Assembly (NCBI RefSeq): GCF_964204645.1
Contig: NC_134035.1
Location: 5,642,001-5,706,000, forward strand
DNA length: 64,000 nucleotides
From: Tubulanus polymorphus
Lineage: Eukaryota; Animalia; Nemertea
Direction: 5' to 3'
A model generated the notes under the pieces. The model made no database searches. It was not told where the DNA came from and saw only the letters and a program-made list of their open reading frames with translations. The position numbers and the translations under genes were made by a program. Positions 14,142 through 63,729 of this stretch are shown piece by piece (the first letter of the stretch is position 1; each line of letters starts with the position of its first letter).

Positions 14142-16423
14142 CCGGTCGACCTTGCGACGACGCGATTTTCTGCGCTATTGCAAGCGATGATTTCATCGTA
14201 AACACCCGTCGACTAATAACACACCCTTGCGACACATACCTGTGACTCTAGTTGCAACCTGACGCACATTTTCGTCGTTAAATTAGACGTTCCAACTAGC
14301 AATCCGTCAAAGAAATTTTTGCTTAACGATCTTAAGAATAGAATGGAAATGTGGCTAAATTCGATGCAGATTTAGAAAAACATTCAAATTGATTTTACTT
14401 CGAACAGCATAACCCATAATCAAAATCCCATCCTCCCCGCAAGTCCGGTAGGAATTCGAACCTGATGGCATCGAGAAACTCGCCACAGAATGAAACCTAG
14501 TTTGGGAATGCGAGGCTGCGTAGCTTATAGATGATGGCAACACTAGCCACATTAGAAACCCGTTCTATTTTAGCCCGGGTTTTCCCATTTATAATCCGTG
14601 AAATGTGCCTCAGCGATTATACGACTAGCAATCCGATTGGTGCGGCAAGTTTTCTTGCGGCAAACCTGCGCACCCGTTCTTCGTGCGGCAGCGATCCGTG
14701 GCGTGGCTGAGCGAAGCGACGCCATCAGGTTCGAATCCCTGCCGGCGGAGGATGTTGTCAAAATCCGCGAGATAATTTACGTTGTTTACATAATTTTAAT
14801 TTATTTCACAAATTACCGGTTTCTACTTTTGATAAACGTGTTTATTTTACAGGTTTCTTGGAGCAGGGCCAACTGGTTCGCGATACGGTGAAATTAAAAC
14901 GCAATTACGCAAAACTGAAAAATCCGATCTTCATATTGGACGTACTGAGCATGATACCCGTCGACATATTCCTGCTCGTCATCGACAAATACTCGCCGGC
15001 GACGCGCATGAACCGACTCCTCAAATTCCCGCGCGTTCGCGAATTCTGCGACCGCACGGAAACGCGCACCAGCTTCCCGAACGCCTTCAGGATTACCAAT
15101 CTCGTTTTCTACATATTTGTGATAATACACTGGAACGCTTGTATATATTTTCAAATTAGCAAATTCATCGGTCTCGGCTCGGATAAATGGGTCTTCCCGA
15201 ACATATCGCAACCGCGTTTTTCGGCCGTCGGCACGCAATACGTTTACTGCTTATACTGGTCGACCGTCACGCTGACGTGCATCGGCGAACAGGCCCAACC
15301 GGAGAAAGACGGCGAATGCCTGTTCGTCATATTGGACTACCTGGCCGGGGTTTTGATATTCGCTACTATCGTCGGCAGCGTGGGGAACATGATCGGCAAC
15401 CTGAACGTTTCCCGGTCTCAGTTTCAACAGCGAATCGACGCCGTCAAACGATACATGGAGTTCAGAAAGGTCGGCAAACACTTGGAGAAACGCGTGCTCA
15501 AATGGTTCGACTATTTGTGGCACAATCGACAAGCGATGGACGAAGAGCTGACTCTGTCGCTGTTACCCGAAAAACTGAAAGCCGAAATATTGATGAACGT
15601 GCACCTGGACACGCTGCGACGCGTGCGCATCCTGCGCGGCTGCGAGCCCGGACTGCTACAAGAGCTGGTACTCAAACTGCGACTGCAGGTGTTCAGTCCG
15701 GCCGACTACGTTTGCCGCAAAGGTGACGTAGGCCGCGAAATGTACATCGTCAAACGCGGAAAGCTAAGCGTCATCAGCGACGACGAACAGACTATTTATG
15801 CAAATTTAACCGAAGGTTCGGTTTTCGGCGAAATTAGTATACTGGACATACCGGGCAACAAAACCGGCAATCGCCGAACGGCTAACGTTCGCAGCGAGGG
15901 CTACTCGGACCTGTTTTGCCTATCGAAAGAGGACCTGTGGAAAACGCTGTCCGACTATCCGGACGCGAAAGAGAAGCTGATACAACGCGGTCGTCAGCTG
16001 CTCATCGATCAGAAACTGTTGGACGAACGCGAAGAGGACGAACGCCTGATGCGAGAAGAGAAGGCGGCTAAGGCGAGAGAAGCGTCGGCGGCGAAGGCCG
16101 CGAAACTGGAGGAAGAACTGAAATTCAACCCCGACGACATTCCCGGCGAAGTACGGAAACTAATGATGGAACTCGACGGATTGTATTCGCACGTCACTAA
16201 AGTGGTACAGGAGCTTAGATCATCAGGACATCTGAATGAGGAGATATCGGGAGAGACAGTACAGCAGCAGCAGCAACAGCAGCAGCAACCACAACAACAA
16301 CAACAACAACAGCCGCCGTCATTACGGGAATTAGGTCGCTGTCACAGTCAGGAAAATGGCGTCGCGTCGACGTCGTCGTGTACCATTAAAAAGCGTACAG
16401 TGCGACAAACACAGACTTTATAA
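12308..16423 (+). CDS. CNGA: Cyclic nucleotide-gated channel alpha subunit (CNGA/TAX-4-like); 5' exons not resolved
   Basis: Exon 12308-12537 (duplicate 13817-14046) encodes S1-S2 (YYYWL...DMIVRFRT) and joins in phase 1 to 14853-16423 (G|FLEQG). That exon carries RMNRLLK S4, [11 protein letters not shown]5, pore [12 protein letters not shown], the C-linker, CNBD FGEISIL...[10 protein letters not shown] and a polyQ tail. Confidence 0.93.
14699..14749 (+). mobile_element. tRNA-derived SINE head fragment (A and B boxes) in the CNG intron
   Basis: TGGCTGAGCG (A-box-like) and GGTTCGAATCC (B box). No complete cloverleaf. Confidence 0.4.
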
Positions 16424-37700: not shown

Positions 37701-40700
37701 TTCTGAATGATAGAATCAGATACATAGTTTCCATAATCGACGGTCGTGACACAAAAATCGAGTCCACCCGGAGCCAACCACTAAGATTTGATTATTCTTA
37801 TAGCAACCCCTATTATCAGATATAAGCATGAAACATGAAATATTTAGCATTCTCATTATTTTACAACAATCTGACCGTGATACTGTAACTTTATTACACA
37901 ACTATTTGTAATTTTCTAACCTTGTAAACCCAGGTTTTCAGGAGACTCCAATATAATCGACAGAAACAACATCGCTCTAGCATACAACTCCAGGTTGTTC
38001 TCTATAATGTATATCTACGAAAAAAAAACCCAGAAGTCCTGTGACATTTCACCGATTCTTGACCAAATATTGCCTGGATTAGATTTTAAGTCGTAAGATA
38101 TCCTCAGTGAAGGCTGTTTCTTCTCAAGAGGTTCTTAGTGCCACTTGTCACCAGCAAGAACAACTAGGGGTCCAGGGACACCATGCCCACTTGGGAAGTT
38201 GTTTCAAATGCTCAACAATCTAACAATTTCAATATTCAACGCCCCCTGGTGACCATATACAAAAACCAATAACCTTGAAACTCACCACAATCATAAAACA
38301 TGTCAGCAGCTACGATTGTGTAATTGATTGTGATAACAAAATATGCCTAGTTACCTATTTAATATGGAAATATTAAGTTATTCTACTATTCAACGCCCCC
38401 TGGTGACCATATTCAAAACCCAATATCCTTGAATCTCACCACAATCATTGAACATGCCATGAGCTACAAGGCCAGTTTTTGGGCTGAAGATGTGTCTAGA
38501 GTACAGGGTTCCCACGGGTTGGCCAATATCATTTTCCATACCTCTTACTCCATACTTTTTCCATACCCAGATTATAAATTTTCCATACCACTAAGTTATA
38601 CATCGCCAACCTAGGGGATTTTTACTGGGGGAATATTTACCTGTTACCCCGAGAAACATGCAACGTAGGTCTCATCAAGGAGAAAGCAAATGAAAGCATG
38701 CGTCTAATTCTAAGTGGAATCAGAAGATTTGGCTTCTAAAATTGATTCGACTTGCTATAAACATAAGTGCTATAAACGAAGTGCTATAAACATAATCTTA
38801 TAATTCATTTTTCTTTTAATTTAAAGATATTCATAACTTCCAAAAAAAAAACAGTTCCAATCTCGGCTCAGCCCGTAAACTCTAGCTGAGCCATAACCCT
38901 AAGCCTAGTTTGGATTTTGACCCATGCCCTTCGCCTACCAGCCGGGTGTGGTAACCACTATACCACAGAGCTCTAGTTTGTCTGGTAAGGTGTGGTGATT
39001 GGTCATCTTGCGACATTTTTAAATGAATCAAACTGCAAATTGATGGTTATTTGTAGTAGTATGAATTTCTACGGCAGAATTTCATACAGAAATATTCACG
39101 AATTTCTCGTCCCAGCAAAAGATATATGTAGAAATTTACCACATAGTTACACATTTGAAACGGTGCAAACATGTCGTATAGAGCATTTTTTACTTCTTCA
39201 GAAATTGGTAAAAATACGGTTATAGTGGATGGAAGTGTGAATATCGCAAATGCGAGCGAAACTGTTACGAGCGTTATCGTCGTACGTTTTGATTTCGTAG
39301 TTCTCTGATCGGAAGAAACCATTTTTGAACCTCTAAATAACTGAGTTATTATGACAGAATTTGATATTAAAATCAAAGATAAAGGCAGCACATAAACGTG
39401 GATGACAGATAACATGAAAAATGTTATTTGGTCCAGTAATTCATAGTAACATCCAAAAAACTGGTCGGAAAAATGTATCGGCCAAACAAGTGTGAGATAT
39501 ATAAACAGTACATTCACTGCAATGATTATCAATATAATGAATCTAGCGAATTTAGGTGTACATATCAAACGAGATGTGAACGGGAAGAGAACAACTGCCG
39601 CGCGTTCTAGAGATACTGCTACTATCAACCACGAACTGCTAGAATTGGCAACTGCCATCAACATTTCATAGATTTTACAACTGATCACTGAATTTATGAT
39701 GAACATAGGACCATATTTAATGTGGCAGAGAACAAATTGTAAAACAGGCATCAGCGTATGATTGATGCAGAACATGGAATCATAGAGAGACAAAACGATG
39801 AGATAGTTAGCGTAAGCTAAACCGCGGAATCTGCGACTTATCATAATAAGGAAAGTAGCGGAATTTCCAAACGTTCCGAACAAGAACAAGATTGGTAGGA
39901 TAATCAGTAACGCAGTGCGGTAGATTCCAGATCTGTTCACAACAGACATGAGAACGATGTAACTGTTATAAGTTCGGCCGATCAGTGTCCGAGTAGAATT
40001 CATGATTCATGAGGATCAAATGAGAGTGTACTGACTGTCTGAGCGTGTACTGACTGTCTGAGCGTGTACCGCCTGTCTGAGCGTGTACCGCCAGTCTGAG
40101 AATGCACTGACTGTCTGAGAGTGTACTGGAATTGACCGTGTCTTCTTGGCTTTTGGAAAACTTTGATAGTATTTTATAGCTACCATCTATTTGTAAGATT
40201 TATTGTTAACAGCCAATAGAAAAAAAAAACAAGACTAGCAGTACTCTATAGGTTACCTATTCATTTGACGCACAAGCTTTTGCTACTAATGAATAGTAGC
40301 TTCATCAGGCGAATGAGTCAAAAAATCTAGCCAATAGAAAATAAATTCTGAGAAATCTAACACAATTTACTCAGATTTAATGAAAGTTCATTATTGTGTA
40401 AAATATGAATGTGCCGGCAACTAAATTAAATATCAATATTCTTTGTACAAGAATTCATTGTGAGTGGTGAAATGAATATCTGAAAACGTACAAACTGTTT
40501 ATGTCGAGACAAGAGACTTTTCGTTATAGAATCATTACTATTTGTAGGATGCATGCGTACCACAATCTATTGTAAATATCATATCGTGTATCATATTGTG
40601 TGTTGCGTACCCTCAACTGCCAGGCTGTTTCTTGTCCACCATCTCTTGAAAAAGTATCTGAGTTTGTACATCGAGATTTTCATGTTTTCTAGTGAGATTT

Positions 40701-42230: not shown

Positions 42231-42785
42231 ATGGCGGACGAAATCGTAGAAACTACTCCCGTCGGCATTCCCGGAGGAGAGGAACAAGAAGATGGCCAGA
42301 AAGACACGAAATCCGACGCGGAAGCGATTATCTACGACGTGCAGATGAGAATTACCGACGCTTTCAATATATTCGACCACGAATCCAACAAAACTGTCGA
42401 CGTACGCGAAGTCGGGACGATCATCCGTTCGTTGGGATGCTGCCCGAGCGAGGCCGAGCTACACGACATGCTCTGCGAAATCGAAGAGGAAGAACCGACC
42501 GGGTACATTCGTTTCGAAAAATTCCTGCCGATGATGACGCACGTATTGATGGAACGGCGATACAAGGCCGCGTTGGAAGATCAACTGTTGAAAGCGTTCC
42601 AAGTTTTGGACGCCGAATCGAAGGGACATATCACGCAAGAGGACCTGACTAAATACATGACCGAAGAGGGTGAACCGTTTACACAAGAAGAAATGGAAGA
42701 GATGCTATCGGCGGCCGTCGATCCGGATCAAGGAATCGTTCTATATAAAGACTTTGTATCAGAAATGGTCGTAGAAGAGACCTAG
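42231..42785 (+). CDS. EFCAB2: EF-hand calcium-binding domain protein 2 / dynein regulatory complex subunit 8, intronless CDS
   Basis: 184-aa calmodulin-like ORF with DRC8 signatures FDHESNKTVDVREVGTIIRSLGCCPSEAEL, EEEEPTGYIRFEKFLP and EEGEPFTQEEMEEMLSAAVD. AATAAA at about 43280. Confidence 0.92.
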   Translation: MADEIVETTPVGIPGGEEQEDGQKDTKSDAEAIIYDVQMRITDAFNIFDHESNKTVDVREVGTIIRSLGCCPSEAELHDMLCEIEEEEPTGYIRFEKFLPMMTHVLMERRYKAALEDQLLKAFQVLDAESKGHITQEDLTKYMTEEGEPFTQEEMEEMLSAAVDPDQGIVLYKDFVSEMVVEET

Positions 42786-43967: not shown

Positions 43968-46083
43968 AATACATTATGACATAAGCGGTTGATTATTTTA
44001 TCAAAACGAAGACTGAAACAGGACACAATCATGAAACGGGTATACACCACTAGCAGTGGACAAACAGTAACCTGTCTTGGGTTTAGTTTCACGATCGGAT
44101 ATTTTCACAAACCACATATGGTAAAAAAGCCCATCCGATTACCAAAGCTTACCACCAACGATTAGGTAACTAACTAGCAGTGGAACAGCATACAGAATAG
44201 CAAAACATACGTGAAAACTTTCAATTCATTGTCCGCGAATTAAGTTTGAGCATTTTAGCATATGTGTGGAGATACGAAATCGATTGCATAGAACTCCACT
44301 TCATAACATGTATGGCATATGTTTAGTACGACTACTCACCCACATCATCATGTCCCCGTCCATCGCCCGAGTTTCAAAATGATGAAATGCTTTATCACTA
44401 ACAGGTTGCATTTCAGTTCGCAGTGTACCTTCAGGTTCCCAAACGGGAGTTCCCTGAAATAAACGGATACGAATTTTAGATCGGGCGAGGCCGCGTGTAT
44501 CGCAGTAACAACTTCATTCATCACAGTATAACAACTAATGGCGACTAAAAATGTTGATGGAGATTAAATGTTGATCTGGTTTTGAACAAACCTTGAATTT
44601 TCGCCCATCTGGACTTTCGAAAGTGTACTCTTCACCGACGTTGAAACTGAATTTCAAATTTTTCTTCACCGGTAAATGCAATTCGATGTCGAAATGGTCG
44701 CCGTTCTGCTCGATTTTCTGCGTGGGTTTATTCCCCTTCGCTATTTCCATTCCCATTTTCTGCAGAAGACCGGCATCTACAAAACAATTCAACCCGATAT
44801 CATATACGGGGCATCCTGACCTTTATTGGTACAGCCTTTCGGCTAAGGGATCTAATTAGCTACGTAATCGTTGGCGGTAAGCTTTATTATTGGATGGGCT
44901 TATTGTGAAAATATTCGATCGCTTAAACCATGGACGTATAAACTAGATTAGACGTCCATGCTTAAACCAAACCATAGACAGGTTACCGACTGAAATTAGC
45001 AAATAAATAATTCTTCGATCTATTAACAATTATAACTTTTTTAAAGACACAGTTTACAGTGAAAAGCCCAATGCATTTACCGCAAAGAAAGGATTGAACA
45101 ATCTTCAAAAAAATCGCATAGATTGAGTGTCGTATTATTTTCTTTTGCCCCCGAATCGCAGCCACCATAGAAAGCTGAGTCATATTTATTGAACTGATAT
45201 TCAATGGATTTTCGGTCTTACATAGATAATTGCGGTATGATTCCGTCGTGTAATAAGATCTTCCCCGGAGGCATAAAACGCGTGAATATATAATACATAT
45301 ATTATTACTACTATTTCTTAGTTGTTTTTTTTAGATAAGGGAATAATGTAAGATATGGACTGTATTTTCTTGTTATGTTTTCCCAAATCAAGTGAATCAA
45401 TGAAAGGTCTAAACACCTTTCTTTATTCAATGCTTCCAAAGCTACATCGCGTAAAGTGTGCAATTAACGGGTCAAAAACAGTACTGTGCCATTTAGGATA
45501 TAGAAACCCGATTTAAAATTTATGTTAGATTATTTAATGTTATTGAAAGTGAAAATTGACGATTAAGACTTAGTTAGAAATATTACGTAATTATATAGAA
45601 TAATACAAGCCCAACGCACACACGGCAAAACATTTGTTTCATCAAACAAAAAACCACGATTTTCATAAAACGTTTTGAGTAAAAGTTTTACCTGCAAACG
45701 ATAAAACGTTCAACGCACATGGCATAACAAAAACACATCGAAAACGCGGAAAAATGTTTCTTCCTTGCCGCATGTCCGTTGGGCATAGATACAGGGTTGA
45801 GTCTAGTTCCATAGTTCTCGGATAACATTTTATCTGCTACGACGAAATCATCAGAAATGCTCAGTCAAACTCTAAACCGAGATCTGTGGATCTGGGTCCT
45901 GGGAAACTGTTTTAGACTTAGGCTATATATCGCTACTGAGTTTAAAATGAACACGAACCCAACCGGAGCCGCGTATGACATTATTATTTACACTATACCT
46001 TCTTTGAGAAACGCAAAAAATTTGTCGAGATTTTCGCTCTTTTCCAGTTTCCATGTACCAGTGAAATTAACGCTCTGAGCCAT
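43907..46083 (-). CDS. Fatty acid-binding protein (iLBP family), classic 4-exon structure
   Basis: Exons 46083-45999 (MAQSVNFTGTWKLEKSENLDKF), 44776-44592 (KPTQKIEQNGDHF..FNVGEEY..DGRKFK), 44453-44340, 43963-43907 (VKRWFVKQ*). Intron phases 1, 0, 0 as in FABPs. Confidence 0.88.
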
Positions 46084-46899
46084 GTTTACGGTGTGTTCGG
46101 GTGTATAGGCTGGGATGTGTTCCGAGTGGAGTGACTGCGGTAATAGATTTTCCTGTAACGATGGAGATTGCACACACAATTCAGGAGAGATCGATGTTTC
46201 GTGGCATTTTGTATAATTGTGATTCAAAGCAGCCATAATTCATTACTAAATCATCATCGTCATTTATACAGCTATGCGAATATGTATTGAATGAATAAGC
46301 AACATTAATATCTTAAATATTCTTTATTTAGGCCTGCATTGAAACTGTCATGACCTCAGACATAAGAACCATCTTTAAAACCTTTCACTTCCTTCGAAAA
46401 AAATTAGAAAAAAAATCCATTTACGAAACTCATCTCATCTTCGGCGTGTACCCCAGTGTTGTGTGCAATGGTTATAAAGATGTGCAAAGTATGAGAAATT
46501 ATTTAAGTCACACATTGAACTTACCAGATCTAGAATCACCGGCACGAATGAGTAAATGCGGCCTCGTCTGATTACCTTAGTCTCTGTCATCGCGCAGTCC
46601 CTGGCTGTGCGTCACAAAAAAACATGCCGTGATTGGTGCAGGTTTTTCAGACGGTAAAAGCAGGAAAATTTCTTTTGGTACATTATGAATGAAAGACCCT
46701 GAAAGGATCTACGCTGGGGCGGTTTTAATTAGATAGTAAGAAGAAAGTTCAAATTCTAGGCCGCTTTTTAATAAACTGCCTGGAAACCTCCGGCGCAACT
46801 GAGCACGGAATGACTGAGGCCCATCTCACTAAAACAAATTTGCTTTACCGTCGTGTACTAAAATGACCATATCGGAAACTGCAATGCAAAATTACCGAT

Positions 46900-47551
46900 A
46901 ACAGATTACTCATTTAGGCGTACCGTGGTAGGTCTTTGAATCAACAAACTGCGTGGCCGTAGGACAGAAAACCATTGATCCCGCCGCCCCGGCGTAGGGG
47001 CGGTACTATACTTCTACTTCGACCAATTTATGGCCACCATCAACCAGTTGATGATTTTGCCATCGAGAGGTGCATGAAAAAATTATTTTATTTTTTTGGG
47101 TGTTTATTATGGTTTTATTCAAAAAATTGCCCCAATGGCGTTAGGCAGTTAGGAGAGACTTGAAGGCTTCAAAGCTCTCGGTGGTCACCGTTGTGGCGGG
47201 TAAGGCATTCCAATCAGCGATGGTCCTTGGGAAAAATGACCACTTGCGTGCTTCGGATGAACACGTTGGCCGCTGGAATGCATGCTGGCTCAGGCCTCTG
47301 GAGTAGCGTATTGGCTTGACGAGACGAGTAGTGGTGTCTAGGTTGGCCATGCTTGTACATCATGGCTAGTCTGCATCATTCCTGCGCCTATTCTCCAGTG
47401 TCGGCCAATTCAGCTTCACCAACATTGCTGTGACGCTTGAGCGGTTGTGTTGACTATTGGTGACGAACCGTGCTGCTCGACGTTGGACCATCTCTAGTTT
47501 TCGGATATCTGAGGACTGGTGAGGATCCCAATACAACGCTGGCATATTCAT
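46900..47551 (-). mobile_element. 5'-truncated, decayed non-LTR retrotransposon (CR1/L2-group) 3' end
   Basis: ORF2 C-terminal motifs WDPH...KLEMVQRRAARFV...SSVTAMLVKLNWPTLENRR and SFFPRTIADWNALP...FK, split across two ORFs (47366-47551, 47141-47350). The 3' boundary is approximate. Confidence 0.85.
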
Positions 47552-48130: not shown

Positions 48131-51100
48131 ATGTTGTTCCTTGGTAGGTAAATCGCTGACATTCTCTTATGCACAGAAGTGGTTTGTAATAGGTAGTGCG
48201 TGGTGCACCGGTCCTCCTCATTACCAAGATGAAGTAATTTACCGAGATCAACTGAGATGACATGAAGTATAACATAAATATTTATTCCTTATCGATTTTA
48301 ACACTTGAAATCATATTATATCAGTAATAAATGCCTGCTGGAGGAGTCATATTTCACATATTTTGTCGGATATTTTGTAGAAAAATAACTTTTGACTTTA
48401 CCGAGATGAGATCAAGGATCGATCATATTCAAATTTTATAATCAATATCCTAGCATGTCGAACGTAAATGATAAAGTCAAATTTGTAACTATAATGTCCT
48501 CTATAGAAATGGCCAAATATTTAGGGAAATACATCGAGAAAGGGTCTAACTCATGAAAAAAAAACAATCTGAAATCTGAGTGTTACGTCGCAGTATCCAT
48601 TAATTAAACTATCACTGATTCACTTACTGAAAACCTGTCTACATCGTGTATATATGTATATTAAACTGTTATATGTATTCCATGTAATTTTATTGCTAAC
48701 CGAGATGACGTATTTGAAGTCAAAATTTTTTTAACCAAATATCTGGAAAAATATGTGAAATATGACTCTGGAAGGTATTTATTACTGATATAACATGATT
48801 TCAAGTGTTAAAATCGATAAGGAACAAATGAATATGTTATATTTCATGTCATCTCGGTTCATCTCGGTAAATAATGTCATCTCGGTAATAAGAAGGACCC
48901 ATGGTGCACTACTGAATACCAAAGTAAACCTTTTCAATGGCAATGCTTTAACCCTTTTGACAATACAACTAGCCTGAGTTGAACAAGCAAAAGTATTTAT
49001 AGGATTGAAAGTTGTTGTGTCTCAAATAAGGTGTTGATAGATAGTAATTAGGGCCTACGCTTATTTGATTAAGATAGAGACATCAGACAGATCTGCAGCC
49101 TAAAAATTGGCTTTTCAGCATCCCTGGACCCATATAGCGGTAGCTATTGACTATATTTTTGACTATACTGTTTCAGAAGTACCCGAGGACGTCGTACGGA
49201 AATGTTTAATCAACCATTTAGAACTATTCGACGATATAATCATCAGTGCAGACGAACCAACTTGGTCGCGATGGGATCGAAAACGCAAAAACACGCTCCA
49301 TTTTCATCGTAATACGACAACGACGTCCTGTTGTAAGTATTTCTATTCAAAATCTATAAATCGCATCGCGCGAGTAGTCTACACGGATGTGCTGATTTCG
49401 CAGCTATGGTGGAACGAAGTTTTCAAAGTCACTGCGATGGGTTATAACAAATCTGAGTACCGAACATTTTTATATCAATCAATCTATCGATTTTATAAAA
49501 AAATTTTATTGTTATTTATATTCTGTGTTTATTTTGATTGATCGTGATAGCGCTTCAGAGTAATTTTGTGATTAAAGCGCTCTTTTATTTTGTACGACAT
49601 AATAAATGAGGATCAATCGGGATAACAAGTACTGCGATAGCATAATGTAACGAGCATCCCACTGAAAAGACGAGAAAATAAGTTTAAAACAGGCGCGCTG
49701 GAAGCAATTTTTGATTGCTGCGGCCAAATACCGATTCTGGACAGGTTCTAAATATTGCCGCAGTGAATTTACTTAATTTCTTCAAAAACGTGGTATAGAA
49801 AGAAAATACGTCATTCAGTAAATTATTGCCGCGGCTTTCGCAGCTGCAGTCGCTGCACTTCCAACGCCTCTGTGAAAATGTTTCTTTGAGCTGCTGGTAG
49901 TTTATTCAACGTTTCGACTATAAACTTCAGGAATACAGGAAACATTTTCGGACTTAATCATTGCGGGATTCTAGTTGTATTATCGTCTCAACGCGGATAT
50001 AGCGTTTTATCAACGGTGGATTGCGATAACACGTCTAGCGTTTGAATTATCAACTCCTGGGGGTCGGTCTCGTAGACCGAGTATCTAAGTTATCGCGAGG
50101 GCTAAATCCTAAATCTGGTTGACAACCACCATAGTAACAATGAAAAACCATTGTTATAACTAACAAATTTCAAAATGTTCCCGGGGACTATTTTTCTTCC
50201 ACATCTATGAAACCTGGTTATTCGCCACTCGTGGTTATTTCTTTTCTAGTGAGTCAACAACAACCTGTTTCAGAAGGCAACAATGATTCGTTTGATAACG
50301 ATGCGAAATCGAGATCGGATGAAAATGCGCCTCGGCGTTCGTCGAATTGCGATTTACGAATCCCGAGCACGGTCACCGAGCACGAATCGCAGACGGCGTC
50401 GACGATACTACCGGTTGAATCGTTACCGGTGTCGATCGCTATGGAAACGGACTTCGTAACCACCGCTCCGGACGTCGAGCGAACGGAAATCTACGGCGAT
50501 CAAGCGATTAAAGCTTGCGACGACGATGAAAATGAAGATGACGTATTAAACGATGAGGAGGATTATAGCGGCGCGTACTCGTCGTCGGAGCGGATTGCCG
50601 ACGAGTTCTTGCAGCAAAACGGCGGTGATTCGTGGACGAATCGGGGAGATTCGCATGACGTACATTCGTCGCTAGTTCACGCAGAATATTTACACAATAC
50701 GGAGTCTCACAATCACATTACACAATCTGCAGGTAAAATATGACAACATTCAATGCTTATAGATTTTGTAAGCATTGATGTAACACTCTGAGAATATATG
50801 AGGGAAAGATAGAATCCCTGAGTTAATGATATAATTTTGACGTTTCAACTTAACGCTGATAATAGTCATCTTCGGGAATACATATGAGATCCAACAAATT
50901 GGTTAGACTCTAGGTACCGGTCCCAACTTTGTAAAAAAGTTGATCAAAGTTGATCGGTTTTATCGGGGAATATCTGCTGTCTCTAGGGGCTGGCTTTATA
51001 GACTGGTATCGACTTTAACCCGAGGGTTAACTTAATTTAAAATGAATTGAGTTAGCCCCCGGGTTAAAGTTAATACCGGTCTATAAAACCAGGCCCAGGG

Positions 51101-51341
51101 TTCTACAACCTATAAACCCTGGATCGATGAGAATAGGGACCGATGGCTAAAACCGCTGAAGCGTCGCCGCTAGTTTTTATTATCTCTCATTTTTAAACAG
51201 GTATCGATATGAACGAAGGCTTAGAGAACGATGAACAGGAGGGGATTACAATAAAAGAAGAGCCGCCCGACGAAATAGAAGAGATCGTATCAGAAGATGT
51301 GCTCACTGCTCATCTACCTGTTCCGCAGTCATTCGCAGAAG
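48131..51341 (+). CDS. Common N-terminal exons of a C2H2 zinc-finger gene (acidic, low-complexity linker; no recognisable BTB)
   Basis: Exons 48131-48143 (putative start, caacATG), 49177-49332, 50250-50732 and 51201-51341 are all joined in phase 1. The last donor is GAA G|GTGAGT. Contains an IKEE SUMO-type motif. The first exon is the least certain. Confidence 0.7.
48194..48911. mobile_element. Foldback/TIR element, about 170-bp arms, in the first coding intron of the zinc-finger gene
   Basis: About 48195-48365 is imperfectly mirrored by about 48745-48911 (for example TTCCTTATCGATTTTAACACTTGAAATCA / TGATTTCAAGTGTTAAAATCGATAAGGAA). Confidence 0.75.
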
Positions 51342-52388
51342 GTGAGTTCTATATATTTCATAATATCTTCTTATTAAAATCAAACGGGTCTTTTATGACT
51401 GTAGAACGAATGTAGCGAGACAGACTGATCTACAACAGAGGTCGTTAATGCCTGTAAAAAGTTGAAATTGTACTCGGATTTGTTTGTTTGACTTGGAATC
51501 TCGGAGAATTCTTCATAAGAAAACAAGAAAACAACGTGATAACGGCTTGCATCGTTGTTTACACGGAACTCTGGTTTTGCGAGCTCGGATAAAATTCGGT
51601 CCGTCCATGAAACGGAAGAACAAAGTTAAACTAGTGTATAGTATGTACGTGTAGCGTGATAGATGATTGAAGACTGGATGTACGTAGCAGTTTGAGAATG
51701 ATCAGTTTCGACGCCTGCTTGTACGGTGCAGTGATGGTCGCGGGATATGGTTTTGTTTTTCCGGTTTCTGTGACAATTGATAACCTTTAAAATGTCGCTG
51801 CAAGAAATGATCGACGTTGGATTTCACGATTTCTTACAAGAGTGTAATGTTGGATTTTAAGGAATCGACATCCGGTATACATTTCGTATAGAGTTTGCTC
51901 ATGACATCGTTCATTGCATTCACCGCATGAGGAATTGTTCCATTCAATTAGTATTGAATGGTGTCGTTTATGGAGGTTTTGCAGCCTCGTGCTTTTTCCG
52001 CTTTTCCAAGATCCTTATGGTTGTAAATCCTCTGATTATTTTGTCTGACTTAATGACAAGTACGCAGCAAGTCTCTATACATATTGGGCAGGGATTTACA
52101 CAGCAAAACGAAAGCCACTTTAAACATTGAAAATAAAACTCAACACTATTACTTACTCTCTAACACCGATATAGTATTTGCACATGGACGGCTTGTGAAA
52201 AGTAGCAGCTTGGTACAAGGGGATTACTGGTTGAATGGTCCCTTATAGGTATAATGCTGAACTGTACGTTTTCCTCCCTGTTTTATGATTACCCCCGGTA
52301 CCCATTTTGAAGACAAATATCGATAAGAACGCGATAAAAAAAATCAATTTGCGAATTGAATTGATCGACGACAATTTGCTGTTTTCAG

Positions 52389-52915
52389 ATGCCTGGATTT
52401 CTCCACAGCAATGGAATAGTAATTTGGTTCCACCGACAGTTTTCCCGCCGGTCGCTTACGACGACGGCTTGCCGATGACGGTGCGAAAATTACGCGTATC
52501 GAATCCGGTTCTAGCGGCAAGTCGAAGACGTTCGGCGCAAACGGTTAGCGGTGTTAGAAAATCACGTTCTCGCACGGGTCTTACCGCGGCGACCGCGCGT
52601 AATATCGACGATAACGAACGAACCGAGAACCGACGACCGACCGATAATAATCGTCACGCGGATTACGTCTTCAAGTGTCGCGATTGTCCGAAGATATTTC
52701 GCCTGCTGAACAGTTTGAAAGCGCACGTCAGAGTTAAACACTCGGGTATCGTGTTCGTCTGCGAGGTTTGCGGCCGGAGTTTCGATCGTAAATATTCGTT
52801 GCAGATTCACCTGGCTGTTCACACCGGCGAACGAAGACACGTGTGTCCCGTGTGCGATCGTCGGTTCACTCAACGCGCGTCGTTATTCACTCATATTAAA
52901 ACGTTTCATGAATGA
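52389..52915 (+). CDS. Alternative terminal exon A: 3 C2H2 zinc fingers
   Basis: TTTTCAG|AT phase-1 acceptor. Fingers CRDC..H..KH, CEVC..HLAVH-TGERRH, CPVC..HIKTFH. Own stop codon. Confidence 0.85.
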
Positions 52916-53253
52916 AACGTAGCTTTACGGGTGAATCCACCTCTGTCTCCTCTCGCAGTTCCGCGCAAAAAAAACACACGTCTCAGTCGCTTTAGAAGCT
53001 TAGATGACGAGGGCGACGCCTAGTGTCAACTTTCGAGCCTCGATGAACACTGCTGATATGTTAGTGCGCAATACCCGACGACGGTCCCTTTTGAGAGACC
53101 GAAAGATATTTTGAATTGTTAGATGGTTATCTTCAATAGATTCAAATGTTATACACAGTCCAATAGATTTCAGTGTTATGCGGTCGAACCTTTTCCCATA
53201 AAATGGGTTCCTCTTATCCGAAATTAAGCAGATTCTACTGTAGTTGGGTTTTT

Positions 53254-54844
53254 AGCCCACTTGGGACTTTAGTCCCAGCGGGCTATTGCGTTCACTTTTC
53301 GTCCATCGTCTGTCCGTTCGTCCATCCGTCCGTCCGTAGACGGAATCCAGTTATTTTGGGAAGTTTTGAAGACGCTTCAAGGTAATGTCTTGATATTTGG
53401 GTTACACATGTATCTACCCTAGACACATCTTCAGCCCAAAAACTGGCCCTATCAGAATCAAGATGGCCGACTGGCAGCCATTGTTGTTCGTCAAAATCAG
53501 CACTTTTTACACATTTTTGAACTTTTTGAGGGAAATTTTGAAGACGCTTTGATCAATTACCTGAATCTTTCGGATATATGTGAATCCCCCCAGGGCCCAT
53601 CAACATAACAAAAATTGGGTCGGTCGGACTAAAGATGGCCGTCCTATGACCTTTTTAGTGCCCAAGAATGTTAATTTTGGCCCAAATTCTGAGTCCTGTA
53701 GCTTCCTACTGGTTTGCCATTTCTCATTACAATTTGTGATGGGTATTCTTTGGAAAGGGATGTTTTATACCTGAGACAGGTATTTTTCATCAGCCAATTA
53801 TGACGCAATTGGCGGCCATCTTGGTGTCACCAGTACTCATTCGTAAGTGGGAAAAAGTTTTTCCACATTATATTGATACCTAAGCATATTTTGCTACCAC
53901 CATCAATTAGAAAGTTGTAGCTCATAACATGTTCTATGATTGTGGTGAGTTTCAAGGTAATTGGATTTCGTATATGGCCACCAGGGGGCGTTGAATAATA
54001 CAATATCTTAGCATTTCTTTATTATATTCGTACCTATGCATATTTTGTAACCACAATCAATTGGAAAGTTGTAGCTCATGACATCATCTATGATTGTTGC
54101 GAGTTTTCTATATGGTCACCAGGGGGCGTCGAATAGTAGAATAACTTAGTATTTCCTTATTATATTGGTACCTAGGCATGAGGAGAGAATCCCACAATGA
54201 TAATAAAAAGTCCGAAAATGAAACTTCGAGATAGTAGTTTATTTCAACGTTTCGACTATATCCTAATAGTCATCTTCAGGAATAATGATGAAGATGACTA
54301 TTAGGATATAGTCGAAACGTTGAAATAAACTACTATCTTGGAGTTTCATTTTCGGACTTTTTATTATCATTGTGGGATTCTCTCCTCATCGCGTCAACAC
54401 GGATATAGTGTTCTACCAATCGTGGTACCTAGGCATATTTTGTTACCATGATCAATTGCAAAGTTGTAGTTCATGACATGTTCTATGACTGTGGTGAGTT
54501 TCGAGGTCATTGGGTTTTGCCAAAAACTGGCCTTGTAGCTCATGGCATGTTCAATGATTGTGGTGAGATTCAAGGATATTGGGTTTTGAATATGGTCACC
54601 AGGGGGCGTTGAATAGTAGAATGAATGACTTAGTATTTCCATATTAAATTGGTAACGAGGCATATTTTGTTATCACAATCAATTACAAAATCGTAGCTGT
54701 TGACATGTTCTATGATTGTGGTGAGTTTCAAGGTCATTGGTTTTTGTAAATGGTCACCAGGGGGCATTGAATGTTGAAATTGTTAGATTGTTTAGCATTT
54801 TAAACCACTTCCCAAGTGGGCATGGTGTCCCTGGACCCCTAGTT
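53254..54844 (+). mobile_element. Helentron-associated (HINE/DINE-1-like) element with internal tandem core repeats
   Basis: 5' subTIR GCCCACTTGGGA with adjacent inverted copy TCCCAGCGGGC, (TCCG)n microsatellite, about 140-160-bp tandem cores, 3' subTIR TCCCAAGTGGGC, then hairpin GGTGTCC-CT-GGACCCC and CTAGTT. Inserted in a T-run. Confidence 0.8.
54180..54422. mobile_element. Palindromic Penelope-like-derived insertion with hammerhead core and 14-bp TSD, nested in the HINE
   Basis: About 100-bp arms (54178-54277 / 54290-54389). TGGTACCTAGGCAT direct repeat at 54166-54179 and 54423-54436. Minus-strand core CTGAAGA-T-GACTA..TAGTC-GAAA-CGT-T. Confidence 0.75.
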
Positions 54845-55800
54845 GTTTTTATTAAGTATAGCAAAGTTTAGTTAGTTTTATAGATGAATACAGTGAACTA
54901 CAGCACCATAACCTATATTGTATAGTCCAGTGTTGATGTACACCGATTCAACTGACCTTGATTATTGAATATTAATGTGGACACTCCGTTATAAGTTGTG
55001 AAATCCAACATTCATTTCATTTTATATAGCATTTAATTTGTTTGACGTTTTATATTTTTAGTTTGTGAAATACTTTGAAAAATATCAATAAAAGTACGGT
55101 ACATTTTTGTGTTGTATTCTATTCTTTGTTTTTCGTCTAATTTGTAATTCTTAAAAATCTTTCCAAGCTTATCTCAGCGGTTTACAGAATCAGCTCGCAT
55201 CATGGAGACTTGATAATACTCGACTAGTGCATTGTACTTCTCAATCGTTAAAATGTACCCAATGCAGAGCGGCCAATTGTTCCTGATTTTCAGTATTACT
55301 ATTTTATGCTGATTTGATTTGTTTGATGATGCATACCGTAATATGAAAGATGTTACTGAAGCTCTTACCTTTGATTGCTGATTGATTTGAATACTTTCTT
55401 TCATACTTCGATGAAATGTTATTGAAAAAAATGCAATTTGTAACCGATAGCACTTTTCAGAGGTTGGCAGCCCTGCCGACAGTTTGACAGACTGCCCACT
55501 GACATTCACCTGACTATTTTACAATATTTTTATTCAATTTGACCTCAGTCACTTCTTGAAACAGATATTTTTGGCAAAATTCCTTTGTGAACTAATTTAC
55601 TACTCTTTTAACTGATACCGTAAAACAAACCGTGATGACTTTTAACTGATACCGCGCGCTAAACATCTTTTGTATTGAACAACGTTTTAAGGAATAAACT
55701 ATCAATGATAAAATTGATCGATGACGATATTTTTCGTTTATTACGTTGTTGTGTTTTTTTTCCCGTTCTGATCTGATCGTTGCTTTTGCTGCTCTTTCAG

Positions 55801-56453
55801 ATGTGAACTGGATCAGCAGTCTGCAGACGTGGTGTAAGTCTCGACAGCGTCCGTGGAACGCGACTAGCGGCACCGATCCGTCGGTCAGATCGACATCGGT
55901 TCACAACAGCGTGCGTCGCGCGAACTCTGAAATGAGAGGAGCGGTCACGTCTCCGGGCTGGCAGCGCAACGGAGAAAACAACGGAAGCGCCGTCTCTGCG
56001 AAACGCGCGGTGTCGAGAAATGCGGCGAGTCGGATACCGCGGAGGTTTCTTGCGAGCGATAATAACAGACGAAATCATCGTCCGTCTGCTGAGAACGAGG
56101 CGACGGTGACGACGCCACGGCGATTTCAACAATATCATCAACGAACGAATAAGAACGATTCGTCGTCGTCGTCGAGTTCGTACGTGCCGATCGTCATGTA
56201 TCAGTGTAAACAGTGTCCGAAAACGTTCACGATCCTGAACAGCCTGAAGGCGCACGTCAGTCGTAAACACTCGGGGAGGTGTTTCCCGTGCGACATCTGC
56301 GACCGCAAGTTCGATCGACGGTTCCTGCTGAAGGAACACCTGCGCACGCACACTCGCGTGAAGTCGCACGAGTGTCGCGTGTGTCGGAAGAGCTACACGC
56401 GCGCCGTGTATCTGAAAACGCACATGAAAGACGCGCACGGCATCGACTTCTGA
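55801..56453 (+). CDS. Alternative terminal exon B: 3 C2H2 zinc fingers (paralogue of exon A)
   Basis: CTTTCAG|AT phase-1 acceptor. CKQCPKTF..LNSLKAHVSRKHSG, CDIC..HLRTH, CRVC..HMKDAH. Own stop codon. Confidence 0.85.
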
Positions 56454-57306
56454 GATGCGGTGTCGTCGCAGCAACAGGGAATGATAAAAACATTCTCTTC
56501 CTATTAGTTTTATCACGTGTCGTTAAACCCACAGACTCCTCATAGACTTCAGGACTCAATTCCGCAGTGGATGGTTGAATATAACTCTAGTCTATCCGTC
56601 TGTTAAAAATCTAACTGTTTTTTGGTCAAATTTGAGTGTCAGTTTATGTTTAACTGAGAACTATGGAACAGGTATGACTCTGGACTCAGTTCCACAGTTG
56701 TGAATTAAGATTTAACTCAAGAGTTAACTCATTGAAAATTAACTAATTCTAACTCGGAGTTTACTCTAACAACTGTGGAACCGGATCCAGGGTATGAAGG
56801 GTAGTAAGACTCCCGGTTAGCTTCTAACTGGAAACTGTGGAGCCGGATCCTGGCGTTCGAGTATCCGGCAAGCCTCTTAGGTTTTGTGACAACCACCGCA
56901 TGACTTAAAACCTTCTTGAATTTTGTTAAAGGGGTTATTTCAGTTTAGTGACACCTAGAACACGCTTCTAAAACCAAATACCCCATCAACCCCTAAACAC
57001 AGATTCAATGACTTTCTCCACTTAGATGAGTTCGACTATGAAAATCTATATTTCGGTATATGCAATAAACCGTTACCCAGACATGGCCAACTCGGACAAA
57101 AGCAAATCATTTTTCTGACTTCTTAACGTAATTTCCTATCGTTGACCAGGACTGGGACTTCGTTAACCTCGGACTGATTTTGATCGGTCCCAGTTTGTCA
57201 GAGTCAGGTGAGGTTTACTGTACAGGGAACTCGGGAACTCTTATAGATAGAAATTTTGTATTTGAAATCAAATAAACTATATTTATACATCATTGTGTAT
57301 TTTCAG

Positions 57307-58187
57307 GCGCGACCGTGCTACCGAGTTTCATCGAAGCGTTATCAGCGCGAAGATTACCGATACCGTCTCTGGTCAGCCATCATCATCACCAACCACCACT
57401 AGGCGGCGGCACCGACGAACACCGACAACTGCGGTACGAGTCGTCTCAGTTGATGGCAGGCGCGATACGCCGCGCGAGTTTACGAGATTCGCCCGGTCTA
57501 CACAGTCCGAACGAGATGTTCGAATGCCTCGCATGCGGCGAACGGTTTGCGGACGAGGAATCGTACCGCGTACACGGCCGGTTGCACCAACGCAGCGCGG
57601 CGAACAGCGGCAGCAGCAGTCCGGCGTTATCGCTCGAACGGCTGATCACTCGATTCGAATGTCGAATTTGCGAGCGCGTCTTTACGCAAGAGACGCACCT
57701 CGCGGCGCACGTTCTGACGCACGGCGATAACGACGCGTCGCCGTGGCACGCCGAGAATTCCCCGCTCGCCGGAACTCATCAAAAACTAACGGAACTTCTC
57801 ACGACGCCATCTCGAACGGACGGTGAGGCCCCTCGCGGAAACAAGCGCTGTAAAATCGACGCGAAAACGACCGACCCGGAACGACACGCGTCGACGAGTC
57901 CAGCGTCGTCGCGGGTGAAACGTTGTCAACTGTGCGATAAAGTTTTCTATCGTCAATACAGTCTCGATCGACACGTCAAAGATGAACACTCCCACGACTC
58001 ATCCGGATTGTACGATTGTCGTTTGTGCGGTCATAAGTTCGCGCGCGATTACCTACGCGTTCACATGCGTATACACACCGGCGAAAAGCCGCACGAATGC
58101 GCGATATGTAAACGTCGTTTCACGCAGCGTTCGACGATGACGCGACACGTTAAACTAGTCCATCCACAGTCTATCTCTCAATTGTAA
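57307..58187 (+). CDS. Alternative terminal exon C: 5 C2H2 zinc fingers
   Basis: TTTTCAG|GC phase-1 acceptor. Fingers CLAC, CRIC, CQLC, CRLC-(TGEKP)-CAIC. Own stop codon. Confidence 0.85.
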
Positions 58188-59701: not shown

Positions 59702-62700
59702 TTAATATCTTTTTGATATTTCTTCTAGTTGATGTTCATCGACAGTCGGGTGTATCATGTTGTTTTTAGGTCTGTCGATATCACTGATAGTTTGAGGCAT
59801 CGGTGCACCTCTAGTTTCCGGTAAGGGTAACATCAGTAAAGCAGTTACCAGTCCAATACACCCGAGAATCACGCCTGGCAACCAAGATATAAATTGAGCC
59901 TGAAACAATTCAATCGAAATTTTGAAATGTTTAACAAGTTACAGGATTGAAAATGTACGAGATAAAATCCTACCAAATAAGCGGCGAATGGTGCTGTCAT
60001 CGACCCTACTCGGGCAAACGCTGAAGCAATACCTATAGCACGGTTTCTATAAAATAGATAATACAGTGATTAATTAAGGGAAAACGATTTCTTTTTAAGT
60101 TACTTTAATGAGTAGAATTTCACCTGAAGTTAGTCGGGTAAAGTTCACTGGTATGGATGTAAACGATACCAAATGCTGCGGCGCAGCAGAATTTCCCTGC
60201 GGTATTAAACGTCATAATTAACGGAACCAAATTCGTCCCTCCTGGAAATATACATTTTGAATCTGTAGTTCATGCTTGAACATTATACGGTAGACTTCAA
60301 TCAAGCTGGATCTTTGGGACCGTAAAGATGTGTCCGCCGGGTTGGGTGTTATGTATTTCATATATAGGCCTACTTGAACTAGTGTCGTAAAAATATTTCA
60401 AAAAACATCCGAGTTGAACCCGGTTATCCGCAGCCGAGTCGATCGGATCCGACTTCGACGGAGTCTACTGTATTTTCATAGACAGTATACTAACAATTCA
60501 ACCTAGTATTAAGTGACGCTTTGATATGTGTACAGTTCATCTTTAACAACCAAAGTGCTTATGCACGGTGAGTATCAGTTGAATTATTAATTCCTATCGA
60601 AGTGGTTTTTAGCTGGCTCTGGGCTGTCTTATACGTTCAGATAAGCTTAAAATACGTACCGACACTTTTAGGACAGAACGTCACAGCTATTAGAACTATA
60701 CCGGTTATAGCATAGAGCAACATCAACGATACTCGTCTTCCAATACTGAAAGATTTTTAACATTTATACATCTTACTCTACTACTGGAGGGTGGGCGGGA
60801 AGACTGAGAATATAGATATTTCTACCCCATAAACAATGAATTTGGCCTTAGCTGTCCATCTGCATTTTTGCACTGAAGGCAAGCAAATTTTTGCTTAGAA
60901 ATCGACCTTATGTCGTTGTAAATAAATTTTTCATGGAGTGGAGATATTGCGGTAAGGAATATATGTCGATTGCTTTTTCAGACGCGAAAAAAGGATTTGC
61001 GACGTGGAACTATCGACGGCTGTCGTCGAACGTACCATAGCAGTAGCAGGTGCATCGCTAGGTAACTCGGTAACTCAATTGCAGTGCTCAGAAAATAATT
61101 AGCAAATCGACCTCCGGCCATTACTGTCGTACTCAGTGTCAACCCGTAATAGGTAAGACTCGTAAAAGACCTGCAAAAAGAGAAAAAAAAAACAGATTCG
61201 CTGTAGTAGAGAAAACGAAACCCGTGCGTCACCCACTTGGCCTGAATATTCAGAACACGAGATACGCAAGTTTACACAATGTAAAAGTTTTTGCATAAAA
61301 GGTATGTCTACGTTTGTATCTTGAATGTACTTTGAACCGATACCGATACTTACCAGATAATAGCTTCTAGCATCGTGTATAGACGCAGTTTTGGATGTTT
61401 GAGAATCTGTAAAATTCCAATCGTTTCATTATTCGAGTCTACGCTACCCTTAGAACAGCCGACCATATCGCTGAAAACCAATTTTACCCTGTGCATCCCA
61501 GGGCTCTCATCTGACCAAAAATAGACAATGTTCCTAATTATTCGGGAACAACGAATTAAGAGGAAGGGAACTTATACGATAGTCCACCTTGTTTTTTGGT
61601 GTCTTCAATCATTGAAATGACGGCTGGTGAAAGCGAACGTTTGTTGAATTTCGCTGCTTTTCGCAAAATTCTGATCGCTTCATCGGGTCTGGAATTAGCG
61701 ACGAGCCACGCTACAGATTCATCGTAAAGCCTAGATCACAACGAATAGATTTTATTAGGATTTAGTATTTACAAAAATACATAAAAATACACTATGTATT
61801 TTTGGTGTATTTTTGGTATTTACCATATTCCTACGATCGGGATACAGAAGGTTAATCCTCCAATGATTTGCATATATTTCCAGTGATCGAAGAAGTAACC
61901 GCAAACCCCCGTGACGAGCATTCCTACTGACCAGCTGACCATGTGAAACGCGTTGGGGAATGAACGCTGATCGGTCGGGTACCATTCACATGCCAAAACA
62001 TAACCGCATAAAGAGGTACCCTGAGTTGAAAACGAAAGAGGGAAATATACAGCAAAAAACGAGAATTAATTATGAATTGATTAGAATAAGTAATTTGATA
62101 CCACGGAGAAAGATAAGAATATTTTTAAAGTACTGGGTCTATGATGATGTATAAATATAAAGGATTCCTGCTTATGAATTTTACATAGTAGGTTTCATTC
62201 ATATAATCTTTCTCCACTTCTGAGTGGATACGGCCTGTTATTCCGCTACTGTTCTAATTTGTCAATAGATTATGGAAAGCGTTGTTCAAAGAAGTCCTTC
62301 AAAATCTTCATGGGCTGTTTTCGAGTTATAGGTGCTATAGGGGGTAGTATATCAAATGCAAATGGTTGTCGACTTGGTAAATACGTATTACGCTTATTCC
62401 AAGGAATGTCAATATGCAAGTCAAATAATAACGCCCGCGTAGTTTAATTTATCTTACTTGTAAATATGTATGCATACCATGTTAAATATTCCGCAGAAAA
62501 ACCTCATTACAGCGAAAAATATCGGATCTACAAATATAGCGGATAGGAACATCGTGACAGCGGCCAATACCGAACAGACTATAAGCGGCCTTTTCCTTCC
62601 GAAATAATCCGACCACGGGGGCACCAATAGACTGCCGGTCATAATACCGCCGAAGAATATCGAAAAAATCAAGGCGTTCATGTGACTGGATTCGCAAACC

Positions 62701-63729
62701 CACGAAAACTGAAAAATAGATGAGATGATTTTACGATTTCTCTGGTGATTGGATCATAGAGATTTCTGCTGAGTGACTGACTGACCTGTTCGGTAAGAGT
62801 GTAATAACCGTGTGACTGGTAAGAGTAACCGTTTTGACAGACGACTGTGGTATTATCTGTAATTGACTTGAATTGTCGACACTGATCGAGTTTAATTTCT
62901 CCATCCTCACTAGTTGTATATGGTATCGACTGGTTCACTGTTTGATTCACCGTAGACAGTTTACAACGATGTTCCGGAATCCATCCTACCATATATGAAA
63001 CATTCTTTGGATGGTATCAGAATTTTTGGCAAAGCAATCGGTTCCCTAGACGCGGATCTTACGGAATTCCGTAAAATTTTTAAACTGCCAATGCAACCGG
63101 TTTCCCAGTTTTTATTTGCCCTTGGAAAATCTTGACTATTGGCATGCTAATAAAAACCTCAAAATTGCCAGGAGGCGGAATAGAAAAACCTCAAAATTTG
63201 GGGCTGATTATAACTTCCGTAAGTTCGTCATGTATAGTAATGCTCCGTTAGGAATTGAATTGAAATTCTGAATGAGAAATTTGATAGAAATTCGATGAGT
63301 GAAGTCTCTTTAAACAGCATAAAAATGAATATTCCGGTTTAGTCAGCTGCTATGTTACTCGGTGCAAGCTGTTTCCTTGTAAAAAGTAACTAAAACATTC
63401 TTTTTTCAAAACATTTTTCTTTCCACCATTATCTAGCTTATCAATATATGATTCGTAATCTGTATATCGAACGTAATCACGATGGTTATCGTGTACGCCG
63501 CAATGAACAGACTCTGCGAAGGATGAATTATTGTATAGATTTATGATATAAATATAGCCCAGCTATGATAAAAAAAATTCATGAATTTTTGCTTCGCGGA
63601 TGTACCTTGAAACATCAAACCGACTGAACTGAAAGCCGATGCGAAACTGACGATTTCGATGAGAAATATCTGTAGAAACTGATATCTTCCGTAACGTCCT
63701 AACTCCTTCAAGGCGTCTTCGACTTCCAT
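59702..63729 (-). CDS. SLC22-family organic cation/anion transporter (MFS)
   Basis: Exons 63729-63606, 62985-62786, 62708-62478, 62020-61824, 61730-about 61575, 61470-61354, 61170-61036, 60745-60660, 60241-60124, 60046-59974, 59899-59702. Motifs: LKELGRYGRYQ, PEHRC, WVC, SDYFGRK, DESVAWL, LTYYGL, IELP, IGRR, ELYPT, ARVGS, LPETRG. Confidence 0.92.
60287..60472. mobile_element. Tc1/mariner-type MITE in an SLC22 intron
   Basis: TACGGTAGACTTC ... GGAGTCTACTGTA imperfect TIRs with TA flanks. Confidence 0.5.

Follow-up and report, generated by a model that had tools for sequence, protein, structure and literature searches.

Can a single gene equip one constant protein module with different DNA-binding regions when that module contains no BTB domain? 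Exchange of the DNA-binding tail on a constant module is textbook biology for a few insect BTB genes (lola, fruitless, broad and tramtrack), and the possibility of the same layout on a different N-terminus is raised by LOC141912993, a C2H2 zinc-finger gene of the nemertean Tubulanus polymorphus that carries the RefSeq product name "uncharacterized protein". The gene lies on the plus strand of a 64-kb stretch of contig NC_134035.1 (positions 5,642,001 to 5,706,000), which we refer to as the window and whose coordinates are used for all features unless another contig is named. A preliminary description, made from the letters alone, had proposed that the common 5′ exons of this gene are joined from one donor to any of three terminal exons, each encoding its own zinc fingers, and that this occurs without a BTB domain on an unrecognised N-terminus. 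Our analysis indicates that LOC141912993 probably does consist of one 5′ module completed by one of three alternative finger-encoding last exons, giving rise to three proteins.

Common exons and three terminal zinc-finger exons

Translation of the region from 48.0 to 52.5 kb, together with the downstream open reading frames (ORFs), yielded exon borders identical to those of the proposed model, such that the borders, the phase-1 donor at 51341 and the three phase-1 acceptors were all reproduced at every coordinate. Coding begins in a micro-exon of 13 nt (E1, 48131–48143; ATG TTG TTC CTT G), which reads ATGTTGTTCCTTG|gtaggt across its donor and specifies the residues MLFL plus the first base of codon 5. 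These are residues 1–4 of the RefSeq protein P0011 (557 aa; XP_074660532.1/XP_074660533.1, T. polymorphus), and the 5′ untranslated region (5′UTR) lies upstream of E1. The second exon (E2, 49177–49332) contains the body of an N-terminal three-helix domain (49177–49295) and a short linker, the third (E3, 50250–50732) encodes an acidic low-complexity common region, and the last common exon (E4, 51201–51341) ends in …GCA GAA G|gtgagt. The acidic character is pronounced, with 50 aspartate or glutamate residues versus 10 lysine or arginine residues between residues 56 and 264 of P0011. Because the coding length of E1–E4 is 793 nt, corresponding to 264 common residues, the donor at 51341 interrupts a codon after its first base, G, and is thus a phase-1 donor.

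Three terminal exons lie downstream. Exon A (52389–52915; ttttcag|AT) encodes a basic linker and three C2H2 fingers, exon B (55801–56453; ctttcag|AT) a basic, serine-rich linker and three fingers, and exon C (57307–58187; ttttcag|GC) a linker and five fingers, one of which has a C-x2-C-x11-H spacing, shortened from the C-x2-C-x12-H of the C-x2-C-x12-H-x3-5-H pattern. Each acceptor (52389, 55801 and 57307) is in frame if exactly one base is supplied from upstream, as required for phase 1, and each exon has one stop of its own (52915, 56453 and 58187). The predicted counts of three, three and five fingers were borne out by Pfam, in which A, B and C match zf-C2H2 (PF00096) with E values of 2.7e-18, 1e-14 and 1.6e-19 and bit scores of 65.7, 54.4 and 69.6 (cut-off 25.2). 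An AATAAA motif follows each exon, as had also been described, at 55087 (A), 57064 (B) and 59263 (C), with extra copies at 54202, 54324, 55693 and 57271; the 3′UTR reaches at least ~53155 in exon A and at least 56985 in exon B. These three are the only ORFs with at least two fingers in the window, and all are on the plus strand. Moreover, the locus is tightly flanked by two minus-strand genes, one FABP-like (44–46.2 kb) and one SLC22-like (59.7–63.7 kb), which leave no space for extra cassettes or for an upstream BTB exon.

The joining of the common exons to exon C is documented by public annotation. P0011 is identical, letter for letter, to the product predicted from E1–E4 plus C, and thus the 13-nt first exon, the common exons and the junction 51341>57307 all agree with an independent RefSeq model. 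When a profile of the N-terminal peptide and its paralogues (alignment A1) was searched against 1.84 billion representative proteins, 32 proteins, P0011 among them, were returned. A search with residues 1–264 of P0011 among public proteins of 306–975 aa gave P0011 as the sole match, E3 as a query of public proteins gave no match, and ORF B had no match at E<=1e-10 among public proteins of 119–378 aa. Since the common region retrieves P0011 alone and ORF B retrieves nothing, no public protein includes exon A or B, whether as the tail of an isoform or as a gene product in its own right. If all three endings are used, the public annotation of LOC141912993 misses two of its three protein endings.

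Probable splicing of the last common exon to exons A and B

Exons A and B were examined using four sequencing runs, in the form of assembled contigs aligned to 51150–57149, a stretch of 6,000 letters outside of which exon C lies. In the run designated X4, one contig (record 17, 881 nt) contains 740 nt upstream of E4, skips the intron preceding E4 and ends exactly at the donor, 51341. The predicted coding sequence of E1–E3 amounts to 652 nt, versus these 740 nt, leaving ~88 nt for 5′UTR. X4 depth is zero across 51350–52349 and again across 55550–55749. A second contig (record 18) starts at 52388, one base ahead of acceptor A, and a third (record 22) opens with 28 letters that have no place on the stretch and is then colinear with it from 55799. 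Together with the AG that is common to the end of E4 and the acceptor, these 28 unplaced letters make 30, or k-1, and an overlap of 30 letters is the expectation for an assembly graph that branches at the end of E4. Contigs of X4 therefore end at the donor and start at both acceptors, with empty introns between them, which is the pattern that alternative splicing from a single donor produces. When candidate acceptors were scored by their polypyrimidine tracts, the proposed site stood out in the case of B but not in those of A and C, and the support for the acceptors consequently comes from these contig ends and the RefSeq model rather than from motif strength. A contig break inside exon A, at 52815–52818, was considered as an internal donor and rejected, as there is no GT consensus at this position; we read it as a coverage gap.

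Exons A and B also bear the marks of conserved coding sequence. Their starts are homologous (DAWISPQQW in A and DVNWISSLQTW in B), and they have in common an 80-residue three-finger block with 49% identity, to which the last three fingers of C can be aligned. Both are intact ORFs in which every zinc ligand is kept, and comparison of the two gives a dN/dS of 0.28–0.35 at a dS of 1.3–1.7, which is saturated. By these measures, A and B are old tandem exon duplicates under long-term purifying selection.

The fingers themselves were compared at the DNA-contacting helix positions -1, 2, 3 and 6, following Zif268 numbering. The contacts of finger 1 are nearly equal in the two exons (LNSA in A, INSA in B), and those of finger 2 (RYSI in A, RFLE in B) and finger 3 (QAST in A, RVYT in B) are distinct. 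The five fingers of exon C present DESV, QTHA, RYSR, ADYV and QSTR. Judging from these contact residues, it is fair to expect that A, B and C would differ in DNA specificity.

Several points weigh against the use of A and B as alternative endings. The types of the four runs are not on record, and X4 is treated as RNA from its spliced behaviour; contigs, in addition, say nothing about RNA abundance or about where RNAs begin and finish. Neither 51341>52389 nor 51341>55801 is among the 15 joints reported, and the 28 letters that overhang in record 22 are not displayed. For this reason, E4 as the exon joined to A and B is something we infer as the parsimonious reading of the contig ends, as distinct from a junction that has been read. 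Contigs of X2 and X3 run unspliced through the donor (51105–51590), and unspliced contigs likewise cross acceptor A (X3, 52154–52614) and acceptor B (X2, 55542–56318). Finally, RefSeq holds a single protein for LOC141912993, without an isoform label, meaning that Gnomon accepted no junction to A or B. Of the common N-terminus with three endings put forward in the preliminary description, the C ending thus stands by the RefSeq model, and the A and B endings are upheld by contigs that end at the splice sites, with the letters of their joints unread.

The colinear X2 and X3 contigs, whose depth is patchy, could be DNA (for example, from Hi-C), pre-mRNA or separate transcripts, and we treat them as uninformative. 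They do keep alive two explanations that involve transcription of the intron or separate promoters. Reading through the donor (51342–51415) would add ~25 residues before a stop is reached (…AEGEFYIFHNIFLLKSNGSFMTVERM*), and the X2 and X3 contigs that cross 51341 would, if they are RNA, specify a protein without fingers.

One of these explanations holds that exon C alone is productive and that A and B are former cassettes, transcribed within the intron 51342–57306 or as noise and yielding no protein. The single RefSeq protein would then be the complete output of the gene, and contigs of X2 and X3 colinear with the genome across both acceptors would be expected. However, it is difficult to reconcile abandoned cassettes with ORFs that have remained intact, with zinc ligands kept despite a saturated dS and with a dN/dS of ~0.3. 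Transcription of the intron is likewise a poor fit to X4, whose depth in the flanking intron is zero and whose contigs start within 1–2 nt of the acceptors. We regard this explanation as unlikely, although it survives better than the others.

Marginally less probable is an arrangement in which the intron harbours two small zinc-finger genes, A and B, that are driven by promoters of their own and start at internal ATGs (…PMTVRKL… in A, …SEMRGAV… in B). Such ATGs do occur in frame ahead of the fingers in both exons, and the starts of X2 and X3 contigs, 220–260 nt before acceptor B and 26–235 nt before acceptor A, could be taken for 5′ ends of independent transcripts. Nested genes would nevertheless leave only coincidence to explain the agreement in phase, the homology of the exon starts and the rule followed throughout the gene family described below. 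They also fail to account for X4 contigs that start at AG|, one of them preceded by 28 foreign letters in a splice-like manner, and a public protein corresponding to B was not encountered in the size range of 119–378 aa. The least probable proposal, trans-splicing of a separately transcribed common part and finger exons, has been reported for mod(mdg4) and lola of Drosophila, the two largest of the insect loci (PMC11426971, PMC13490949), and contigs are blind to cis versus trans joining, but nothing at LOC141912993 requires it, as the exons lie on the same strand, in order, within 10 kb and with ordinary splice sites.

We therefore consider it probable that all three tails are used from the E4 donor, and more probable still that at least two of them are. 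On this reading of alternative last exons, E1–E4 would supply the N-terminal domain and the strongly acidic region, the latter being a possible effector or activation part, and the transcript would then be completed by A, B or C, each contributing its own stop and poly(A) signal.

Where genes use alternative last exons, polyadenylation at a proximal site generally competes with splicing to a distal one. The choice of tail in LOC141912993 may likewise be made between cleavage and polyadenylation after a proximal exon and splicing to a more distal one.

The N-terminal domain and its gene family

The N-terminus of the predicted proteins is a domain of ~45 aa with the signature V.E..L..CL..H.D.LD..V..ADD.TW.RW...R (alignments A1 and A3), which occupies residues 6–49 of the library proteins. 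It is not a BTB domain. At E<=1, none of the exons E2, E3 and E4 matches a Pfam family, and a six-frame search of the whole genome for BTB (PF00651) gave 64 matches, none of which is on C11, the chromosome contig that contains the window. The BTB/POZ domain of the insect loci is thus missing from LOC141912993, in keeping with the BTB-less architecture that had been described.

Structure prediction suggests that this region is nonetheless organised. With an alignment of the family, AlphaFold2 folds residues 1–52 encoded in the window into three helices (pLDDT 85.1), and it folds the form of the domain found in a genomic cluster of paralogues into a beta hairpin followed by three helices (pLDDT 90.7). 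By these confident predictions, the N-terminus is a genuine domain with a defined fold. Prediction of a homodimer gave a score of 0.01 in a program in which the monomer fold is itself uncertain, and this result is evidence neither way.

The view that the N-terminus is unrecognised has held up in profile and structure searches. Among 39 sequences of the domain, Pfam gave no match to KRAB, SCAN or ZAD, and only two stray matches, to PAH and ScsC_N, at E>0.03. A sequence profile search of the PDB yielded no match (best E 1.2), and a Foldseek comparison of the model with the PDB yielded none. A wide VIA-align search reached a best Z of 3.1, with unrelated small helical pieces, and Atlas, queried by features and by shape, returned nothing usable. 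A search of the literature found no paper on a zinc-finger family with this domain. By analogy with the position that BTB occupies, the domain may act as a protein-protein interaction or effector module.

The distribution of the domain is narrow, and its hits among the 1.84 billion proteins belong almost entirely to T. polymorphus. Of the 30 hits for which the source was looked up, 28 are T. polymorphus RefSeq proteins named "uncharacterized", one is a gene from the assembly GCA_044232415.1 and one is a spurious match to a repeat. The GCA_044232415.1 gene, which encodes 78 aa on a contig of 1,066 nt (JAZHCE010056404.1), is ~90% identical to paralogues at 17.71 Mb on T. polymorphus contig C7; it is the sole holder of the domain outside RefSeq among the sources looked up.

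In the T. polymorphus genome, the peptide encoded by exon 2 finds 45 matches and the profile 49, the copy in the window having an E value of 2.1e-16. Approximately 15 copies are clustered on contig C8, at 11.41–11.64 Mb, and the others are dispersed across ten contigs. In genes of the cluster, the start (MLLLEGVEVH) and the domain share one exon, and dispersed genes have a phase-1 intron directly before the domain, with a conserved acceptor. RefSeq models of dispersed paralogues open with a four-codon micro-exon (MLFL|E, MPLM|K, MVII|D or MVWF|D), which lends support to the 13-nt E1 in the window. LOC141912993 has the features of this family, with the signature lying within the first ~50 residues and a phase-1 donor (G|gt) paired with phase-1 acceptors.

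A search for paralogues with the same N-terminus and cassette arrays had been suggested together with the original model, and alternative tails are indeed annotated within the family. RefSeq isoforms X1 and X2 of the paralogue LOC141901926 have residues 1–198 in common and then diverge into different finger tails, using a donor (…TCT G|gtgagt) and acceptors (cag|GT and cag|AC) that are all phase 1, at a locus with four tandem finger ORFs. The ORF that contains the last common exon of this gene (C3:4065556–4066491) is open through the donor for 312 codons and has nine fingers, such that skipping of the splice would give a further finger-bearing ending. The paralogue closest to LOC141912993, LOC141899354, also starts with MLFLE and has two finger ORFs. 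The layout is accordingly not new to annotation, as RefSeq already includes LOC141912993 and, for paralogues, alternative finger tails.

To gauge how general this layout is, the 10 kb downstream of 20 further dispersed loci with the domain can be considered. Finger ORFs are present on the same strand at 19 of the 20 loci and on the opposite strand at none of the 20. The number of finger ORFs is one at 12 of the sampled loci, and two, three and seven at two loci each. These counts point to a tight coupling of the domain to zinc fingers, with a minority of genes, LOC141912993 included, having several candidate tails.

Other elements of the window were also noted. Intron 1 contains a foldback element of ~690 bp (48210–48899) that looks like a MITE or foldback transposon, with arms of 134 nt (87% complementary) and 42 nt (86% complementary). 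The region after exon A, at 53150–54950, is a high-copy repeat at which contig depth is 10^4–10^5 in X2–X4, with many internal joints, and a smaller repeat lies at ~56560–56750, inside the 3′UTR of exon B. Directly upstream of LOC141912993, minus-strand ORFs at 44535–46236 resemble a fatty-acid-binding protein, FABP (…VNFTGTWKLEKSENLDKFF… and …KFSFNVGEEYTFESPDGRKFK…), an assignment made, as are those of the channel, receptor, EF-hand and transporter ORFs below, by reading the translation only. Between these and the gene, ~600 bp upstream of its ATG, two short minus-strand ORFs (47141–47551) look like the C-terminal end of a reverse transcriptase from a non-LTR retrotransposon (…FFPRTIADWNALP…). 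Farther away are an exon resembling a cyclic-nucleotide-gated channel (14858–16423), a single-exon GPCR-like ORF on the minus strand (39047–40003), an ORF for an EF-hand protein (42231–42785) and, on the other side of the gene, the minus-strand SLC22-like transporter gene (59702–63729).

Relation to known systems

The organisation of LOC141912993 resembles that of lola, fruitless, broad and tramtrack in having common 5′ exons, an N-terminal module that does not bind DNA and mutually exclusive terminal finger exons, as well as a stop and a poly(A) signal for each terminal exon (present here in the sequence) and cassettes that arose from tandem exon duplication. It differs from these genes in that it is devoid of BTB/POZ, carries at its N-terminus a three-helix domain of ~45 aa for which no relation to BTB is detectable, and has three cassettes only. 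LOC141912993 thus works in a lola-like manner yet stands outside the lola-type family, because it does not have the BTB domain by which that family is recognised, and is instead a member of a Tubulanus-specific family defined by the N-terminal domain.

The TTK-type BTB domain, which is carried by the multi-isoform factors of flies, has been found only in Arthropoda (Bonchuk et al., PMC11426971), and independent, convergent evolution is therefore the straightforward reading. It is natural to conclude that the layout of LOC141912993 evolved independently of the arthropod TTK-BTB loci. The suggestion that this gene represents an independently evolved diversification system is retained to that extent, with the amendment that the layout is not unique to the locus in the window but occurs in a family within the same genome.

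We can also entertain, as a tentative proposal that we consider rather doubtful at present, that the N-terminal domain is an undescribed oligomerisation or effector module that originated in the Tubulanus lineage and replaces BTB, that the ~49 genes form a combinatorial transcription factor system convergent with the arthropod TTK-BTB system, and that the three-cassette gene is a simple state preceding large arrays. In insects, tail swapping has been linked to the arthropod-specific type of BTB. A spiralian worm employing this logic on an unrelated small domain would show that evolution can arrive repeatedly at the architecture as a way of diversifying transcription factors, and that tail swapping does not depend on BTB. 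With three tails within 10 kb, LOC141912993 is compact enough to be a convenient system in which to study isoform choice and the role of the N-terminal domain.

Compared with the cluster on contig C8, LOC141912993 has the same N-terminal domain but is a dispersed single gene, on C11, whose start codon resides in a separate 13-nt micro-exon, whereas the start codon of the cluster genes resides in the domain exon. The family as a whole is reminiscent of the KRAB-, SCAN- and ZAD-containing zinc-finger genes, in which a small N-terminal domain has likewise expanded in one lineage into dozens of paralogues, in part clustered, that combine it with C2H2 fingers. Its domain, unlike theirs, matches none of KRAB, SCAN and zf-AD in Pfam. 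The mode of diversification differs as well: the KRAB-, SCAN- and ZAD-containing genes owe their diversity of DNA binding chiefly to gene duplication, each gene having a single finger array, whereas LOC141912993 places several arrays, as alternative last exons, downstream of one 5′ module.

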